In this document: positions 49,375 to 59,790 of the stretch, piece by piece | Position numbering within the stretch: the stretch's first letter is position 1 | Layout of the letters: each line of letters begins with the position of its first letter | NCBI GenBank assembly: GCA_026936335.1 | Contig: JAPMXV010000035.1 | Span: 124,001 to 188,000, forward strand | Length of the DNA stretch: 64,000 nt | Direction: 5' to 3' | Origin: Mantamonas sphyraenae STR306 | Lineage: Eukaryota > Protista > CRuMs | Position numbers and translations under genes: made by a program | The notes under the pieces: generated by a model | What the model was told of the DNA's origin: nothing | Database searches by the model: none | The model's input: the letters and a program-made list of their open reading frames with translations, nothing else

Positions 49375-50556
49375 TTAGCGGCACAGGTTGAAGCAGCACC
49401 ACCAAGTGCAGCAGGTGTCAGAGTCCTTGAGGTTCTGCACGTGCATAAACTTGGCCACAAACTCCTCCTGGGACATCTTGGTGGAATCGACGTCGGAATC
49501 GGCGAGCGGGTGGTCGTTGGGCTGGTTTGCGTTTCGAGAGCCACCGCTGCTGCTCTTGGCTCCACAGTCGTACTTGCAGCTTGCGAAGCGGTTGCGTGCA
49601 TCGTTGTACAGCTGCTGGTAGTTGGGGTCATCCGGGTTCATGTTGTACTGGTGCACCAGGGTGGCCAGCACGTGTGCAGGCGGGCAATCCGTGTAGTCGT
49701 CCAGCTCGTTGGCCAGCTGACGGCATGCGGCACCAGGCAGGTGCTTCTCCTTCTCCTCCTCCTCGTCAGAGTCGTTCACCACGTTGCTGTTCTCCATGGT
49801 CTGCTCGTCCTCCAGGTCGTCTTCCAGGTTCTCGTCCAGCTCGTCTTCCACGTCGTCGTCCAGGGCAGAGTCGGAATCCTCAGCTCCCTCCACGTCCGCA
49901 TCGTCCGAGCTGTCCTCCTCCTCAACCTCACTGTTCCATGCCGCGTTTGTGACACCAGCCAGGGTTCGATTCGCCCAAAATGGGTGGTTTTTTTTTTTCC
50001 ACCGTCCCCAATCCTGCGTCAGTGTTTGTCCCTTGCCTGTGCCTCTCCTCGCCCCTCTCGACACACAACACCGTCCCTATTGTCATTGCGTGCAACTGTA
50101 GTCTGCAGGAGGCATGTTTGCATGCGCACATGCGTTCCCTACACCCGTCCAGCGGCCTCGGAAGGGGCGCTGGAGCGGCTGCGCTTCGCCAAAAACTTTT
50201 TCAAGCTCGAGCGGGAGGTGTCGCGTCCGTCTGTGTGCTGCTGTCGCACGTGTCATGATCCACACTTACCTGTTGTCAGAGTCCTCCTCGTTGTCCTGCT
50301 GCTGCTCAGCAGCGCTCAACTCGGCGTCCTCCTCGTTGGCGAGGCGTTCCTCCTCGTCGTCCTCGGCGCCCTCTTCCACCTCGTTCTCGCCCTCCTGCTC
50401 CTCCTCAGACTCGCCAGCCGATTCCACGGCGGAGCCCTCCTCCTTGACAGCATCCTTCTCGACAGTCTGTTCGGCCTGGGCCTGCTGTTCCTCAGCAGCC
50501 ATGGCAAACGCAGCGCTCAGCAGCAGTGCAATCAGAAGCAGCGAAAGCTTGGACAT
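49375..50556 (-). CDS. Secreted acidic protein with Cys-rich C-terminus
   Basis: Signal peptide MSKLSLLLIALLLSAAFA, Glu/Asp-rich segments, multi-exon, ends TCCTWWCCFNLCR; internal exon boundaries uncertain. Confidence 0.65.
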
Positions 50557-50608
50557 TTCTGTGCGAGCGTGTGTGCGTCAGCTACTGACTCCAACCACCG
50601 TGCGTGTA

Positions 50609-50652
<44 letters not shown>

Positions 50653-50755
50653 GTGGACGAGAGTGCTGCGTGCTGCTGTGGAGGAAGCGTACTGTGTTTG
50701 GTTTGCCAGCGAGCGCGCTGCGTCGTGTCCACCAAACATTTCTGAACTCCCGCTC

Positions 50756-51529
50756 ATGGCTTGCTCTCGTGCGATCGTCCTGTTGGTTGGGATTGTGACG
50801 CTGGCGAGTGTTGTGGCAGCGATGCCGGTGCCGCACGCAACACACCCGGCGGTGATGGACAACGTTGGGATTCCGGCCGGGTATGACCCACCCCTGCAGA
50901 ACCGCTACCCGGGCTACTCCATCGGGTCGGACAAAGCAACTGTGGTGCAAGTGAGCGCATTCTGGGATTTCCAATGTCCCGACTGTCTGGCGGCGTACCC
51001 GCACGTGAAGAAGATGCTGGCCCACTTTGGCGTGGACGCCGGTGCCACAAACGCTCCGTTTCGCTTCACCGTCCACCCGGTGCCCCTTCCGTACCACCGC
51101 AACGCCTTTATTGCCGCCTCCACCGTCTACACGTATGCCAAGATGCAGGCAGCCAACGCCGGGGCGGACATGAACGCGGCCGCCTTTGAGATGATTGACA
51201 AGCTGTTCATGGAGCAGCCCAACTTCTACAATGGTCCCTCTGCCAACAAGACGGATCCGGAGATGGAAGACCTGTTTGCACAGTATGCCAGTGACCTGGG
51301 AATCAGCGACACGACTGCCTTTAAGCAACAATTGACCAGTTCCGAGACGTGGTACAAGGTTGTGTACGATTTCAAGTTTGGCACAGGTGCCCGCGGCGTG
51401 TTTGGCACTCCCTTCTTCCACGTCAACGGTGTGGTCGTGGATGCTGACAGCACATGGACCAGCCAGCAGTGGATCAACTTTCTCGACAAGGTCATCAACG
51501 GCACGGACGTCACGCACGTGCGTACGTAA
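50756..51529 (+). CDS. Secreted DsbA-like thioredoxin-fold protein (paralog 1)
   Basis: Signal peptide, FWDFQCPDC, PLPYHRNAF, GVFGTPFFHVNG. Confidence 0.9.
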   Translation: MACSRAIVLLVGIVTLASVVAAMPVPHATHPAVMDNVGIPAGYDPPLQNRYPGYSIGSDKATVVQVSAFWDFQCPDCLAAYPHVKKMLAHFGVDAGATNAPFRFTVHPVPLPYHRNAFIAASTVYTYAKMQAANAGADMNAAAFEMIDKLFMEQPNFYNGPSANKTDPEMEDLFAQYASDLGISDTTAFKQQLTSSETWYKVVYDFKFGTGARGVFGTPFFHVNGVVVDADSTWTSQQWINFLDKVINGTDVTHVRT

Positions 51530-51639: not shown

Positions 51640-51860
51640 AACACTGTATTGCTGAGCGCAGCGTGCTGTGCACACTTCCCACAAAAAATCTCTCTCCCCT
51701 GGAAACGTGTTCACTACGGCCGCGTCGGCGCTACGCCGGTCCTAGATAAGTACCAGTCGTTGTCGTTGATGGTCAGTTGTCGTTGTCGTCGTCGTCCTTG
51801 TGGATTCGCTGCAGGCCAGCTGGACGTCTTCCTTGCGTGAGGAGGCACACGGCCAAGATC
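51640..51860 (-). ncRNA. Candidate Fanzor omega-RNA region (inferred, boundaries unknown)
   Basis: Position at the ORF 3' end up to the element end is where TnpB/Fanzor guide RNAs lie; GC-rich hairpin CGGCG-nnn-CGCCG at 51726-51738. Confidence 0.3.
51659..51675 (+). repeat. Left inverted repeat CAGCGTGCTGTGCACAC
   Basis: Matches the reverse complement of 57050-57066 at 16/17 positions. Confidence 0.7.
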
Positions 51861-54800
51861 GCGATATTGAGCAGAGCGTTGACATCTCGATTGATGACTC
51901 GCATGCTGTGGGCCCCTGCACACGCCTGAACCGCTGCACGTGCCCCTGCCGTGGCACTGCGACACCCGTGTTGTGCAACACACTCTTGACAACCAACCCA
52001 GCGTCCCATCGATTTTTTCGTGCTGCCCAAGGCATGGCAGTATTGAACTTCTCCATGGCACCGTGAGTGGTTCTTCGTGGTGTTGTACTCGGATACAATG
52101 AGCACCAGGGTGTGCAATGCAAGCTTCGAGGTCCAGGAGGTGAAGTTGCCCCCCGTCCAGGTTTGTGGCCCTGCCACAGTCAGCACGTGCTTCCTGTGCA
52201 ACGTTTTTGCATATGACTTTGCCGCCGTGTAGCATCGCTGAGCCTGCGCATTCTTGCAGCGAGCTGACTGAGCCCTGGATGCTGGCGTGTGTTCGCCGCT
52301 TGAGCGCTTGTGCCCACGTCTTTGCACCAACTCTCCCCTGTGCGAGGTAGTGGACACGCGCACGAGCGTGCCGTACACACGTGAACCTCGTCGGAACTCA
52401 GGCTCAGCAGAAGGGGCAAAGAGCGCTGCGTGATTTTTGGTCTTGCCACCGTCCAGAATCAGCATCACCGCCTCGTTCATCCACGTCTGCGGCGGCTTGC
52501 GGAACAGCACCTGCCTCTCAAACAGGGCTCCTTTTGGAGTCAATGCCTGCTCCCGGGGAATACAATCGAGCAGCTTGTTTGCTTGTTCGGCGTTGTGGCC
52601 GCTGGCGCGAAGCAGGCGCACAGTTCTTTCGCGGCCGAGCAATCGCACAGATGCTGTCAGAATGACAGCAGCGTTGTGTGACTTTTTCAGGAAAGGCAGC
52701 AGGTACGCAACGCTGCGCTGTGAGGTCTCAAAGAGCTCATCCAGAAAAAAGCATCCACAGATTTTGGGGTCCAGGTACGAGTCCACCAGGCTCAGGAGGG
52801 ACAATAAGGGTGCCTGCTTGTGACGGCAGTACTTCCACGTGCCCATGTGCCGCGCAGCACTGCCCCAATAGCCAGACAGCTGGCTGGGCGATGCAGAAAG
52901 CAAATCCGGTGTGAAGATGAGTGACACAAGGGGTGGTTGTGTCGTCCTCGCACGATGCTGAGCGAGGCTGTTACATGATAACCATGCCTCAACGAGCGTT
53001 TGCAAGTAGTCGATGTTGGCACACAACGTGTCCTTCTCTTGCATGACAATCTGGTGCAGCTCACCGGGATTGTCCGCATCGTTTGCCCAGGCCTGAAGGT
53101 TCTCCACGGTGGCGTTTCCGGTGCTCTCCCACGTGCGGAGGATGTTCCAATAGTCTGTCGGCGTGTACATGACCTGCGCCTCTGGATTGACCTGTTGGGG
53201 AAGGTTCAGCGGCTGCTCGCCTGCCTTCAGCGTGCTCACAGCATCCAAAAGGTCTTTCACGTCGCCATCCGCATACAGGTGGTCCGCGGTGAAGTGGATT
53301 GTCTTTAACGCCTGCAGTGCTGCCTGTTTCAGTGCATCGGGGTCTGAATCGGACACGGAAGAATCTGCCCCATCAGATGTTCCCGAGGCAGAGGCTGAGG
53401 AGGATGAGGAGGAGGATGAGGATGAGGATGAGGATGAGGATGAGGATGAGGATGAGGATGAGGATGAGGATGAGGATGAGGATGAGGATGAGGATGAGGA
53501 GGAGGCGGCGGAGGCGGCGGCGGAGGAGGAGGAGGAGGAGGAGGCTGCGACGGGTGACTCGAAGATTTGCGTGAGATTGACCTCCTTCAGCCGCTTGCGC
53601 ACCATGGCGGCCGTCCTTGGCTTTGTGCTCTCCTTGCCGTTGTCGTTGAGGTAGTCTGCAATCACCTGGCTCGCTGCCTCCATGCCCAGAGATGTGACGT
53701 CTTCAGGCAGCATTGCGTGCAGAGCGCATGCCCGCGCTGCGCCTTGAACAAGCACAATCATGTCCTGTGCACAGCTGGCTCCGTGTTTGCCGACTGCAGC
53801 CAAACCGCGCTTGGTGTCCTCGTCCAGGGCTTCCACCAGTGGCACACAACCAGGCCCGGCGGGGGCATCCGCAATTTGGAGCGGTGACGGGAGGCACCTG
53901 GAGGACCAGTGCTCGTTTGCACTCCAACCAGCATTTCCTGCGGCCTGCACGTCCAGCACCAACACCTTGCCATCGTGGCTCTGTGCCAGTGCGTTCGCCA
54001 CACTCCTTGCTAGCTTGTCCAGTCGCAGGGTCAGAAGGGGAGAATCCACGGGCACAGCGTCGCCCGTTTCACCTGCGCGTGTTGTTCGACGTTTGGGAAC
54101 AGAACGAACGGCATCCTGCAGGAGATAAGGGAGAAGCTTCACGAATACGTTCAGCATCACCAGTGTGGCCCTCCCGAAGGCTTGTGTTGCAGAAGAGAGG
54201 TCTGAAACAACGGCATGCGTTTCGGCGGACCAATCAGCCGCGTTCTCGCTGGCCGCGGCGCCGGCCTTCAAAGGGATCATCGAGACGTCCGAGTCCACCA
54301 GACCACACAGGTGATCCGGTGCCGTCTTTCCATCCAAGGCACCGACCCAAGCACAGGCAGCGAGGACGCCGTCTTCCCCGATTTCGCGCATCCGCTTCCC
54401 AAACATCTTTGTGGCCTCTTCTTCCAGACTCAGCAGACCCTCCTCGCGCTTCTCGCTGACGCTCATGCGACGCTGCTTTCTGTACAACAGCGAGTAGTAC
54501 AAGGGAAGCAGGCCATGCTCGCGTGCATATGCTTGGATACGCTTCCGCGGCCGTTTCTTGCTCAACTCGGCCGTATCCATCTTGTCACGAAGCGACAGTG
54601 CCTTTTGAATGAGTTCAGCGTCGACCCTGTCCCAGTAGTTGGCCATGGCGTCGCAGAGGCTGCTTGAAACGACGTCTCCTCCACACTCGAGTTCCATCTT
54701 GCAGACGCGTTTCAGCTGGGTCCTTCTGATCGTCACTCTCATTTGCATGCTTGCTGAAGCTTGCAGACGCTCCAACAGGTGCTTGACCTCCTCTGCCAAC

Positions 54801-56876
54801 CGTTGCGCGTCACCCAACACGGAGATCGTGTGCGTGTGACTCTGTTTGTCCTCGCGAAAATGGTCGCCGGCCATCAACACGACGTCCCCGCCAGCGTCCT
54901 CCGCATCGTTGTGTGCCTCTTCCAGATCCAGAAGCACATCATACGCGTTGTTCAGCACTACCAGTGTCTTCCTTGCCCTCCCTGTCCGTGTGTTCCTTGT
55001 GTCCAGCCCATGGATTCCATGGATTCGCTCTGGCGAACCGGCACCCACAATCACAAGGTCCTGTACATTCCCACTCTTATCCACAACGACAGAAAAGGCT
55101 TGTCCGACAAGTACATACGCCACCTGTCGTTTGGCGGTGGAAAACGAGTCCCAGGATTCCGGCAAATTCGCCGTCCCTTCTTTGCGCAGCCGCTGGGCAA
55201 AGAAGGACTCAAAGGCCCGGACCATGGCACCCTTGTCGCCCTTGCTCTGGTCCACCATCTGCTGGTACAAACCCTCCAAGGCCTCTTTGCTCACACTGTT
55301 GGGGATTTGGCTCTGGATGCGCTGGCTCTGCCGTCGCCTGTGAAACACACTCACCCATGGTGAGTCCATGTACACTGCACTGTCATACAGGTCATCCTCA
55401 AGCAATTGTCTCGATCCGGCAGACAGGGCTTGGTAGTCGCTGAGCAGCTTGCTCTCCTTGGCAGTGAACGACTTCGACAGGTACTCCACCAGATGCTGGA
55501 GAGAATCGATATGAACGACGGAGAGATGGTTGTCGCCTGTGCTTGGGGGTTCAAACCCCGTCGGTACGATCAGCTCGGTGCTCGCGACACCACAAGCCTT
55601 TGAAACCAGTGTTGAGTACTTTGAAAGCAGTGGGACCCGCGACGGGATGCCATCTCGCTTGCCAGTGAGCAGAGCGAACGTGTTCAATTGATACCTGGTC
55701 AACTCAGTCACCTCGTATGCCAGTAGCGGTTCTGTGGGATGCACACTGAAGAAAGACGCAGAAACGGTGGGGGCCAGTCGCACCACATCGGAGTCAGTGT
55801 GCACAAAGACGTGTTGGTACCGGTCATAATGAGCTGAAAAGAAGGCAGCCATTGCCTCCTCAGCTTCCAAAGAGGCCGACGTCGTTGGTGCAGGCGACAG
55901 AAACACGCCAGGCGTCTCTTGCATCGGCTGGGTCCAATCGTGCCGTGGAATGGACCTGGAGAGGTACTCGTGCAAGTAGCCATACGTCAGGTACGACCTG
56001 CATTGCCACAGCATGTCCTGGGTGGAGGATGGGTGTGAGCGAGGGAAATGAGAGAATGGCATGGGCACAAAAATGGATGCCTCACCTCATAGCTGGGCGG
56101 CTTCTTGTTTGATGCGGAGTGGCTGAGATGCCTCAACAGATCCTGGACATGCACCTTGTCCTTGAAGTGGGTTTGCATGCCTGCAAAGTCTTCGGGGGCA
56201 GCGTGGTGATCCAGGAACAGCAGGATGGCGGCATTGACACCTCTCGCGTCCAACTCCTTTTTCAACTGCGTCACCTCGTCAATGACTTCGTTTGCCTTGG
56301 TCCTGATGTGCGTTTGCACTTGCTCTTGTGTTTTCTCCTCCAGGTTTGCGTGCAGCCAAATGCTTTTGTCTGTGGAGGATGAGGAGGGGCGTGTGAAGAA
56401 CGGCAGCAGTGTGTCAGTTGGCCGTTGCGTTTTTGGGCGTTTTTGGCGCCAGCCAGCCAGTCACTGCACGTACAAAGGACACCACCATCGACACAGACCA
56501 CCATCATGTCTCCTTCGGGGTCGGCAACCTCGGAAATTCTGCTTGCCAGGGCAGGGGCGTTCAATGAATGACTGTTCTGTGGCAGTTGCGCAGGTGGATG
56601 TTCGCGCGGCGCTGTTGTCTCCTCTCCGGCCATCATGCGCATGTGTTTGAGCAGTACTGCCTTGCTGGGCCGCCACACCTTGTGTGTTTGGCCTGTGGCG
56701 TCCATCGTAACTTCGACAACCGCTTGTGCATCTCCATCGAATGCAGTCACAACCTTTCGCACGCTGGGCGGTAAGTCGTCCACACGAACCGATCTGGCAG
56801 CAAGGACGTCCTGCTGCCCTAAGATGGATTCAACAATGCCATCTACGGCGTCATCGCGGCTGCTGGATGATGACAT
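51773..56876 (-). CDS. ~1643-aa FEN1/XPG-like nuclease fused to Fanzor/TnpB-type RuvC-zinc finger nuclease
   Basis: Exons 56876-56474, 56369-56086, 56017-51773 (4932 nt, in frame). XPG-like motifs VCVDGG, LFLD, EAEEAMA, HTDSD, LTRYQLNTFALLTGKRDG. Fanzor motifs LILDGG, VSEYNTTKNHSRC, CQEC, INRDVNALLNI, GRRPAGLQR. Confidence 0.85.
53395..53545. repeat. (GAGGAT)n/(GAG)n microsatellite encoding the poly-Ser linker of the fusion protein
   Basis: Near-perfect hexamer run seen directly; translates as poly-Ser on the minus strand. Confidence 0.9.
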
Positions 56877-57049
56877 TGTGTTTGATGCGACTCCGCGCGC
56901 AGCCGGCAGCTGTTGACCTCCTTTGATGCACACGTGCCAAGATCATAACAGTGGCGAGGTCTGCCTGTATCATGCTGATCTCCGCTTTCCCGACGTGGGC
57001 ATGTGACTGTTTGTGATCGCTCTGGTGTGGAGTTTGTTTGAAAATCCAG

Positions 57050-57066
57050 GTGTGCACAGCGCGCTG
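57050..57066 (-). repeat. Right inverted repeat (plus strand GTGTGCACAGCGCGCTG)
   Basis: Reverse complement CAGCGCGCTGTGCACAC versus CAGCGTGCTGTGCACAC at 51659. Confidence 0.7.
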
Positions 57067-57090
57067 AACTTAACTGTAACGGGCCTCGGC

Positions 57091-57762
57091 ATGACGACTG
57101 CGACACATCGACTGCCTCTCCTTGCAGCTGTACTGCTGATATTGTGTGCGACGTGTTGCATGGGCGACCACTTTGAGCGACGCACGCCTGGCTACCGGCT
57201 GGGATCCCCGCTGGTCGATTCGGTGCATCTCGACTTTTTCCTGGACTTCCAGTGTCCGTATTGCAAGACAGCCTTCCCCACCATCCAGAGTGTGATGGAG
57301 CATTACAACGGCAACGCAGCAAACGGCTCGATGCCGCTTCGCCTGGTCCTGCACCCGTTTCCGCTTCCCTTTCACCGTTCCGGCTTCCTCAGCGCCTCAG
57401 CCGTGGCTGCCTTTGCACAGCTCATGCCTGGAGGCGAAGTCAAGTACATTGAGAAGCTGTATGCGGAACAGGATCAGTTCTACAATGCCCCTTCGTTCAA
57501 CAAAAGCCAGGCCGAACTGACGGAGCTCTTTGCGCAGTTTGCCAGTGAGTGTGGCATGGATGACCAACAGGCGTTTGTGAAAGCCATGCAATCGGATGTT
57601 GTGTATGAACAGGCCATCGGCAGTTGGCAGTACGCCATCGTGCGTGCCGTGCGAGCCACCCCAACCTTTTTTGTCAACGGCGTCCATGTCGCCGACGCGG
57701 ACAGCACATGGACGGTGGCACAGTGGACCAAACTGTTGGATCCGCTGGTGTACGGGCAATGA
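57091..57762 (+). CDS. Secreted DsbA-like thioredoxin-fold protein (paralog 2)
   Basis: Signal peptide, FLDFQCPYC, PLPFHRSGF, VRATPTFFVNG, DADSTWT shared with paralog 1. Confidence 0.9.
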   Translation: MTTATHRLPLLAAVLLILCATCCMGDHFERRTPGYRLGSPLVDSVHLDFFLDFQCPYCKTAFPTIQSVMEHYNGNAANGSMPLRLVLHPFPLPFHRSGFLSASAVAAFAQLMPGGEVKYIEKLYAEQDQFYNAPSFNKSQAELTELFAQFASECGMDDQQAFVKAMQSDVVYEQAIGSWQYAIVRAVRATPTFFVNGVHVADADSTWTVAQWTKLLDPLVYGQ

Positions 57763-57814: not shown

Positions 57815-59790
57815 TTAGCAAAATCGTGACAACCCAAGGCTGCGGCCTGCGGTGATGTCATCCGAGACTTCGTTGATGCCTGTGATGGCCATGAGGACAA
57901 AGCTGACGCTGAGGACAATGGAGATGACCATGGTGATGTAGGACAGCTTCCTGTGCTTCTTGATGAGCCAGTTCATGATGGTCTTCCCTGTGAGGGCGCC
58001 TGCAAAGCCCACGCAGGTATACCAGAAGCCATAGTCGTAGGGAAGGAGGCCTAGGACGAGATACTGCAGTGTGGTGGCAGATGCGGTGAAAAGGATCATG
58101 AAACTGGTGGTCGGGGCGACGATGTACGGATTCATGCCCATGTGCAGCAGCAGGGGCGACTTGATGAGGGCATCCTCAATGCCCAGAAGACCAGCCATGA
58201 TACCAGCCACAAAGCTGTACATGCAGTACAGGAGGATGTTGTCGATGGTCCAATGAATGTCGCCTTCGGGGAACGGGTAGCGCAGGCGGACTTTGTTCTC
58301 AAAGTCGCTGTGGAGCCTGCGTGCAGCCCAGGCGGTGGCCAGCAGGACAAAGGGCAGCACGGAAAAGATGACGGACCAGTATTCCCAGGTGCAGCTCTTG
58401 ATGCCCAGGATGGAGGGCATGGCGTGGCCTCCGTTGCTCAGCGACACAAAGAGGACAAAGAACCAGACAAAGACGAGGAGAGCAATCTTATCCCAGGCCG
58501 TCTTGCTTTCCTTGAAGATCATTTGGTGGACGGCAAACTGCTCCTCACGAAACAGATTCTTGGCGCCTGCACGGCCCTGTTCGTCGTCGCCCTCGTGGAG
58601 GGCCATGGTGCGGATGCCGCCGTCGTCGTGGAGGAGGTCATCGTCGTCGTCGTCTTCGTCCGAGTCGGCAAACGGGTGTGCGGCGGAGGGCGACAGCAAA
58701 TCGTGGCGTTCGGCCTCGGTGGCGAGCTCGTCGCGTGCAAAGTGCACCCAATCCGGGGAGGATTCTTGCCGATGCAGCTCACGAAAGTGCTTGAAGGTGC
58801 GCCAGGAGGCAACGGCCAAGGTGGTGGTCAGCAGAAAGACAATGAGCCAGGTGGGAAACACGACGTTAAGGAAAACACCGAGAATGGTGGCGGCCATGGT
58901 CAGCGGTTCGCCCACAAACGCCGCGTCATAGTTGATCAGCGGCCGGTTGACCACAGGGTGCCGCTGGCCAAAGTTTTTGATAAAGGTGGCGATGGAGCCG
59001 CCAAAGATGGTGGCCTTGCTCAGTGGGATGGCTGTCTGCGTGGGAAATTGCGCAAGGAGGATGAACAGGCCCACGTACAGACCGCCGCCGCCAATGCCGC
59101 CTGCAGCAGCAAGCGAAGCTGTGGTGGAAGGCACAACGCACACGGGTGCATCCAAAGGGTGTCACGTGCAGAAGGACGTCCATGTGAGCAGAGGCGGCAG
59201 GACGGGAGGTGGCAAACACGCCGGGAGGCGGAGGGGGATTGTGTTCGCGGGACCCCCGGGGTGGGGAAAGGCAGGCCCCTGGCGTGTGGGGAAGGCATGG
59301 GAGAGAGGCGATGGGAGGGCAAGGGGAGGGCAATGTGGAAGAGGGAGGGTTGGGCGGATGTGCATGGGCACGCACCTGCGATAAAGGCGAGGAAGGTGCC
59401 GAAAAAGTCGGGGCCGTTGAAGTGCGGGAAGAGCGACTTGTGGGCGCAGATGGAGCCGCCTGCGTCGCGGACGGGACGGCAGACAGTCTGTGGAGACTCG
59501 CATTGGGTTGTGTTTTGGCAGTAGCTGCAGATGCCATCTATACACACGAGCTGCTTTCCGCACTCTGCGAGCTGGAACTGCAGTTTGCAGTCGAGGCCGA
59601 GGGTGCCTGTGGGGTTGTTCTTGGGCGACACAAAGCGCCCGTCGGGGTCGCGTGGCACAGGCGTGGGCGTGGGTGTGGAGGTAGGATCAGCAGTGGGTGC
59701 TGCTTGGGTGCATGCAGGCAGCAGGCACAGGCACACCAACAACACCACGCATCGCAAAACGACCAGACGGGACGGAGGACGCAGCAGCAT
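57815..59790 (-). CDS. Sulfite exporter TauE/SafE family protein with Cys-rich N-terminal ectodomain
   Basis: AAGGIGGGGLYV, AIPLSKATIFG, RPLINYD, TTSFMILFTAS; intron 59375-59119; signal peptide. Confidence 0.9.

Follow-up and report, generated by a model that had tools for sequence, protein, structure and literature searches.

Gene structure and domain layout

The stretch of DNA analysed here, referred to as the window, comprises 64,000 nucleotides (nt) of the genome of Mantamonas sphyraenae STR306 (contig JAPMXV010000035.1, positions 124,001 to 188,000), and all coordinates below count from its first letter. It contains a giant gene that is the single gene of a mobile element of about 5.43 kb (51645..57079, minus strand) and that very probably encodes a 5' nuclease fused to a Fanzor-like module. 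The listing of open reading frames and inspection of splice sites give a minus-strand gene of three exons (56876-51773), whose coding sequence (56876-56474, 56369-56086 and 56017-51773; 403+284+4245 nt) amounts to 1643 codons and a stop, exactly the spliced length of 1643 amino acids (aa) put forward in an initial annotation of this DNA. Exon 1 (56474..56876) holds 134 codons plus 1 nt and ends two codons past the V-C-V-D-G-G strand bearing D130, exon 2 (56086..56369) carries a W-L-H helix and the L-F-L-D strand with D188, and exon 3 (51773..56017) contributes 1414 codons and the stop. The two introns (intron 1, 56370..56473, 104 nt; intron 2, 56018..56085, 68 nt) both run from GT to AG and are pyrimidine-rich in their 3' parts. 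Before splicing, the locus appears as a 1431-aa open frame (51773-56068, minus strand) with two shorter frames upstream in other phases, reaching up to 56933. Translation of the frames, exon mapping and counting placed every motif listed in the initial annotation at the residue given for it, and its statement that the XPG half is split over three exons also holds, with D130 in exon 1, D188 in exon 2 and the remaining acids in exon 3.

The FEN-superfamily 5' nuclease domain (55559..56594), with D130, D188, E280/E282, D304/D306 and D351, spans all three exons and both introns. It is followed by a middle region of about 665-700 aa (53549..55543), which is weakly conserved between subfamilies, holds no recognised domain and includes a basic patch, K-K-R-P-R-K-R (54539-54559), resembling a nuclear localization signal (NLS). 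A poly-serine linker (53396..53542), encoded by a long trinucleotide repeat, then leads to the 527-aa Fanzor/TnpB-like module (51776..53356), the RuvC core of which lies at about 51776-52483; all of these features are on the minus strand. The codons of the three RuvC acids, D1418 of RuvC-I (52451..52453), the rearranged RuvC-II glutamate E1539 (52088..52090) and D1607 of RuvC-III (51884..51886), correspond to residues 1206, 1327 and 1395 of the 1431-aa frame. These acids and E280/E282, D304/D306 and D351 all lie within the one uninterrupted frame of exon 3. Since the XPG-I-like and RuvC motifs thus share an exon, their co-translation is independent of the splice model. With high confidence, the protein is composed of an N-terminal FEN/EXO1-like 5' nuclease (PIN plus H3TH), a fast-evolving spacer and a C-terminal Fanzor module.

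The N-terminal FEN-superfamily domain

The initial annotation had assigned the N-terminal half to the FEN1/XPG family; the FEN-superfamily fold stands, but the XPG profiles do not recognise it. XPG_N (PF00752) and XPG_I (PF00867) gave no match at E<=1 on the window's frames or on five paralogous giant frames, and scans of the genome with the two profiles list only other, ordinary-sized loci, such as five XPG_I places. A profile of the N-domain family likewise retrieved nothing from the sequences of the PDB. As a hidden Markov model (HMM), the N-domain recovers the same giant frames as the C-terminal query described below, and an HMM built without the window's subfamily still matches the window (E 5.8e-5) across the E-A-E, D-S-D and G-K-R-D motifs.

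Because the window's N-domain is split by introns, the fold was predicted on a paralogue, L015 on contig C43, translated unchanged; its frame reads through both introns, and the intron stretches are disordered in the model. The L015 N-domain model reached a predicted local distance difference test score (pLDDT) of 72 and a predicted template modelling score of 0.68, and shows a PIN-like alpha/beta core followed by a helical H3TH region. Among the best 50 Foldseek matches, 47 are FEN-superfamily or XRN 5' nucleases, including EXO1, T5 D15 exonuclease, T4 RNase H, a plastid exonuclease, FEN1, Rad2, ExoIX and Xrn1/2. In a second, independent structure search, the top 16 chains all belong to the FEN superfamily and span residues 9-354; XPG and GEN1 are also among the matches of the L015 model.

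The claim that seven acids of the FEN1/XPG/EXO1 type occur in order is borne out for the window copy, which has all seven FEN1-equivalent acids in canonical order. Six of them, the equivalents of FEN1 D34, D86, E160, D179, D181 and D233, are kept in every subfamily examined, the exon 2 acid (D86 in FEN1) being D or E depending on the subfamily, and the equivalent of FEN1 E158 is often Ser in other subfamilies. By its predicted fold, the N-domain is a divergent member of the FEN superfamily, not a demonstrated member of the XPG Pfam families.

Two further observations concern domains of this kind. Large clusters of arthropod and mollusc proteins in the ESM Atlas resemble the FEN-like model (template modelling score 0.50-0.54 by query); they have up to 1399 members of 417-812 aa, are automatically named Tesmin/TSO1-like CXC or hypothetical, and might represent transposon proteins that carry a nuclease of this kind. 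At G000:C38:193792-194106, XPG_N has a weak match (17 bits, under the cut-off) in an open frame of 1233 aa that is part of neither the giant fusion family nor the ordinary XPG genes.

The C-terminal Fanzor/TnpB-like module

When used as a query against its own 25 Mb assembly, the C-terminal module identified 23 further places (E 0 to 1e-9), nearly all of them in stop-free open frames of 1175-2087 aa. Five of these relatives are close (74-98% identical to the window C-terminus), and the remaining ones are 26-37% identical over the last ~220-390 residues, with motifs far more canonical than those of the window, whose subfamily is the most divergent of the family. In a 15-member alignment, the invariant features are the RuvC-I Asp, the Glu of N-E-x-x-T-S-K, the R-D-x-N Asp, three cysteines and the tail G-x-R-P-x-x-L, the G-x-RP tail noted initially being among them; D1418, E1539 and D1607 are invariant both in this alignment and in the 15-sequence full-length alignment.

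A profile of the family had a single match in the PDB, the mimivirus TnpB-like protein L79 (Fanzor2, 9b0l; E 2e-4), aligning precisely at the N-E-Y-x-T-T-K...C-G and D-R-D-x-N-A-A motifs. In this alignment E1539 falls on E467 of the mimivirus Fanzor and D1607 on the Asp of D-R-D-x-N-A-A; E467 is the catalytic residue in rearranged position, and its replacement in the E467A mutant leaves that enzyme inactive (PMC10530073). Profile comparison, which the initial annotation had proposed for both ends of the protein, matches Fanzor2 at the C-terminus but neither XPG_N nor XPG_I at the N-terminus. In addition, PF07282 (the Cas12f1-like TNB zinc finger) matches nine of the 15 family members at E<=0.1 and exceeds its curated cut-off, in a scan of the genome, in copies on C22, C17, C43, C49 and C44; the guided_TnpB profile matches one member only (E 0.064). 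An AlphaFold model of the window C-terminus has its best matches in the RuvC domains of Cas12j, Cas12k, Cas12b and Cas12a, in agreement with a Cas12/TnpB-type RuvC fold as predicted. The TnpB/Fanzor/Cas12 RuvC signature read from the motifs is upheld by the Fanzor2 match, by PF07282 in the paralogues and by the Cas12-like model, and the C-terminal module is a divergent Fanzor. Both folds on which the initial annotation had staked its case beforehand, PIN/FEN at the N-terminus and RuvC at the C-terminus, were found in the structure searches.

Single-sequence searches were less productive. The window protein was searched in pieces, exon by exon; phmmer of these pieces against the PDB and Pfam on the window's frames returned no match, and phmmer with the last 527 aa as query gave 0 matches among 1.84 billion representative proteins. 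Together with word-seeded protein searches and a metagenome scan with a paralogue, this exhaustive phmmer search yielded no homologues outside the genome. The search for the same architecture elsewhere, also proposed at the outset, was productive within the genome itself, where at least 24 giant open frames contain both modules, but gave no protein relatives beyond it.

Other Fanzor-like genes are present in the assembly. Ordinary-sized frames of 633-849 aa occur at C44:209417, C52:436203, C58:24124 and C6:54752 (PF07282, 45-52 bits), and a second giant group of about 22 places (such as C12:157185 and C70:203576) has 1780-1977 aa and PF07282 above the cut-off, without the FEN-like domain. Within this genome, Fanzors have diversified into several giant forms of more than one domain.

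Selection, the middle region and recombination

Nonsynonymous to synonymous divergence (Ka/Ks) was compared region by region between the window copy and four close copies. The ratio is 0.12-0.16 in the N-domain, 0.05-0.13 in RuvC, 0.23-0.31 in the pre-RuvC part of the C-terminal module and 0.29-0.39 in the middle region; with values of 0.05-0.39 in every region, the whole protein is under purifying selection. In the middle region, almost no residue is conserved between subfamilies in the 15-sequence full-length alignment, and a feature search of the ESM Atlas gave nothing for it. A hidden transposase was considered for this region and rejected, there being nearly no conserved residue and no DDE-like block. 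At the poly-serine site, the serine runs differ in length between close copies, indicating that linker length is unstable.

The constraint on the N-domain bears on what this domain does. Even if the architecture is right, the FEN-like domain might mature or trim a guide RNA, cut the displaced strand of an R-loop as a second active site or only bind nucleic acid. However, six of its acids, the invariant D-S-D among them, have persisted through deep divergence at the low Ka/Ks of this region, which would favour catalysis over mere binding, an argument that applies to DNA and RNA substrates alike. Such alternative roles are considered unlikely.

Divergence is uneven along the gene. Between the window (51776-56017) and copy L024 (G000:C68:267600-276500), synonymous divergence (Ks) amounts to 0.78 for the N-domain and 0.43 for the middle region, as against 0.025 in the pre-RuvC part of the C-terminal module and 0.11 in RuvC. 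This contrast between N-domain and C-terminal module suggests recent gene conversion or recombination between copies of the element.

A multi-copy mobile element with inverted ends

The giant gene belongs to a multi-copy mobile family with inverted-repeat ends, a property absent from the initial annotation and relevant to the mechanism. Five copies on other contigs are homologous to the window from a sharp start at 51645 to a sharp end at about 57067-57079, and the flanks are unrelated. At the gene's 3' end lies an inverted terminal repeat (51645..51675) with a core at 51659-51675 and an imperfect repeat of ~30 nt to the tip; its counterpart at the gene's 5' end (57049..57079) holds the palindrome C-A-G-C-G-C-G-C-T-G. 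The 17-nt core is 94% complementary to 57050-57066, and imperfect inverted ends of ~30 nt are common to all six copies. Inside the element, apart from the two nuclease modules, no second gene and no conserved catalytic block were found.

Other subfamilies form discrete units of 6-8 kb with one giant gene each. Their ends are alike, beginning near T-A-C-A-G with a GC-rich palindrome 12-25 nt inside, and similar termini are shared by L013, L015, L016, L028, L029, L037 and the window (57049-57079), the proteins of which are only 20-35% identical. The shared subterminal palindrome may be a common recognition site. In every subfamily examined, a phase-1 intron is located exactly two codons past the D-x-G strand with the first catalytic Asp; exon 1 donors were seen across L013-L039 (for example L016:6632-6751 and L019:2861-2980), and the first intron is readable in frame in paralogues L015 and L020. 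This shared position indicates that the fusion gene and its intron predate the diversification of the subfamilies.

A shortened copy, L027 (G000:C35:262800-271500), is found on the same contig as the window. It lacks the equivalent of window 55010-56893, that is, the N-domain and the gene start, and retains both ends and a 1175-aa open frame, as an internally deleted derivative.

Inverted ends, the lack of any other gene and copies at unrelated loci are also what would be expected if the giant protein served as transposase to a cut-and-paste element of a new or Academ-like type, its RuvC and FEN-like nuclease acting on the inverted ends with no RNA guide. The GC-rich palindromic subterminal motif common to such distant subfamilies likewise speaks for this explanation. 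AcademX transposons, treated by Kojima in 2020, reportedly encode a single large protein that combines a transposase with an XPG nuclease. However, the RNase H-fold domain of the present family has the TnpB/Fanzor-specific TNB zinc finger, the rearranged Glu and the D-R-D-x-N-A-A motif, and we know of no TnpB-family protein that is a transposase. The middle region offers no conserved DDE-like block, and the RNase H domain of Academ has been reported without Pfam similarity (PMC5751038). The Academ nuclease lineage makes duplications of 3-4 bp, according to a paper that cites Kojima (PMC10045372), whereas no consistent target-site duplication, of 3-4 bp or otherwise, was found at the junctions of 14 copies. 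On this evidence a transposase of the cut-and-paste type is quite unlikely.

At individual junctions, an exact 8-nt direct repeat straddles those of L019 and L029 is flanked by a repeat matching at 7 of 8 positions, the two being mutually out of register; besides these, none of the 14 copies has a duplication.

The same data address the suspicion that the locus represents a host gene family, a decaying inactive repeat or two genes wrongly joined. The gene is known from DNA alone and protein searches found no homologues outside the genome, both of which would be in keeping with such an origin. Yet sharp boundaries with inverted ends recur at six unrelated loci, at least 24 open frames of 1175-2087 aa are free of stops, purifying selection acts on all regions, and one continuous frame joins the XPG-I motifs to RuvC. 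We therefore regard an inactive, misjoined or host-gene origin as very improbable.

The conserved 3' tail and a proposed mechanism

From the stop codon to the tip of the element runs a conserved non-coding 3' tail of 128 nt (51645..51772, minus strand), a candidate guide-RNA scaffold and/or end-recognition site. Compared with the most divergent close copy, the tail is the best-conserved segment of the element (0.82-0.86 identity versus 0.58-0.70 elsewhere), and the tail together with the last few hundred bases of the open reading frame has 0.79-0.86 identity. A second subfamily has the same pattern of conservation at its 3' end. Such conservation is compatible with an RNA scaffold that overlaps the gene's 3' end, as it does in TnpB and Fanzor, and equally with recognition of the end by a protein.

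The reading that we favour, and that as a whole appears rather probable, is a two-nuclease mobile element in which the Fanzor cut is followed by processing by the tethered 5' nuclease. An RNA from the conserved 3' end of the element would guide the Fanzor module, which would cut DNA at sites without the element. The tethered 5' nuclease would then resect the 5' ends, or cut the displaced strand or a flap, and the break would be repaired by copying an element-bearing template instead of by end joining. In this way, an element lacking a transposase would be helped to maintain itself and spread within a eukaryotic nucleus. The exact part that the 5' nuclease plays in this scheme, whether resection or cutting of a flap or displaced strand, is proposed tentatively and at less than even confidence. 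The boldest version, a self-sufficient RNA-guided machine that cuts, resects and copies, with an EXO1-like domain that commits the break to homology-directed copying so that no transposase is needed, is speculative and on present evidence somewhat unlikely.

Several results weigh against the two-nuclease reading. The gene model and its splicing are predictions from genomic sequence. The window's own subfamily reaches no Pfam threshold, and the first pair of its zinc finger is altered to H-x-x-C-H, so the zinc-finger-like pair of the initial annotation stands for the family through PF07282 but is irregular in the window itself. The model of the C-terminus is of low confidence (pLDDT 55). For the 3' tail, a stable or covarying RNA structure was rejected, as there are no compensatory pairs between copies and the folding energy is no better than that of shuffled sequence (z +0.71); Rfam gave no match on the element. 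Moreover, given copies at unrelated loci and the lack of a consistent target-site duplication described above, homing alone cannot explain the spread of the copies.

Relation to known systems and significance

To our knowledge, no RNA-guided DNA endonucleases other than Fanzors have been described in eukaryotes. With characterised Fanzors (ApmFz2, 9b0l; SpuFz1) the window family shares the split RuvC D/E/D triad with Glu in the rearranged N-E-x-x-T-S-K position, the TNB zinc finger (at the family level), the D-R-D-x-N-A-A-x-N-I motif, a Cas12-like RuvC fold, an NLS-like patch and spliceosomal introns. It also shares a transposase-less element with inverted repeats, a type already known for Fanzors, as in Spu-1 (PMC10432273). 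In contrast, the window protein has about three times the size of a usual Fanzor, with a FEN-like nuclease at its N-terminus and a spacer of ~700 aa; it is too divergent for single-sequence database searches, and its guide RNA is a candidate. A literature search found no report of a natural pairing of Fanzor with an XPG or flap endonuclease; judged by titles and abstract openings, the four listed of five texts in which Fanzor and flap endonucleases are mentioned together appear to have no bearing on such a fusion, three being on genome engineering and one surveying how genes are transferred among animal viruses. Disordered N-terminal regions and NLSs are described in the main Fanzor surveys, and an added nuclease is not.

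Compared with the FEN superfamily (EXO1, FEN1, XPG/Rad2, GEN1, T5 D15, T4 RNase H, the Pol I 5' nuclease and Xrn1/2), the window domain differs in having no XPG_N or XPG_I match, unlike the ordinary XPG genes of the same genome, and in being fused to a nuclease of the RNA-guided type on a mobile element. AcademX, as reportedly described by Kojima and as outlined in PMC10045372, is similar in its large single-frame element, inverted ends and combination of an XPG-like nuclease with an RNase H-fold domain; the RNase H-fold domain of the window is TnpB/Fanzor-like, however, and no 3-4 bp duplication accompanies it; a relationship to Academ may nonetheless exist.

Engineered fusions of Cas9 or Cas12a to T5 exonuclease or EXO1 alter break processing by combining a programmable nuclease with a 5'-3' exonuclease. 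Those fusions are man-made, whereas the fusion in the window is natural, borne by an element and diversified into many subfamilies, and it has been kept across deeply diverged subfamilies under purifying selection. It suggests a testable answer to how Fanzors could be of advantage to their elements in a nucleus where end joining prevails, namely that the breaks are processed by the element itself. Given the parallel with the engineered Cas-exonuclease fusions, the design of editors that promote templated repair could draw on the protein or on the way its domains are arranged. If the cut, resect and copy version were true, the element would be a natural RNA-guided gene drive and a ready template for genome editors biased towards homology-directed repair.

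Genomic surroundings of the element

The element sits between two DsbA-like genes of the thioredoxin fold (50114-51529 and 57013-57762, both on the plus strand), and a gene for a TauE/SafE-type exporter is next (57815-59155, minus strand). A duplication of the DsbA-like genes made by the element was considered and rejected: the two are only 39% identical, which marks them as old paralogues, and the flanks have no other match in the window. Judged from the reading frame, the second DsbA-like gene probably starts at an ATG about a dozen bases downstream of the element's 5' tip.

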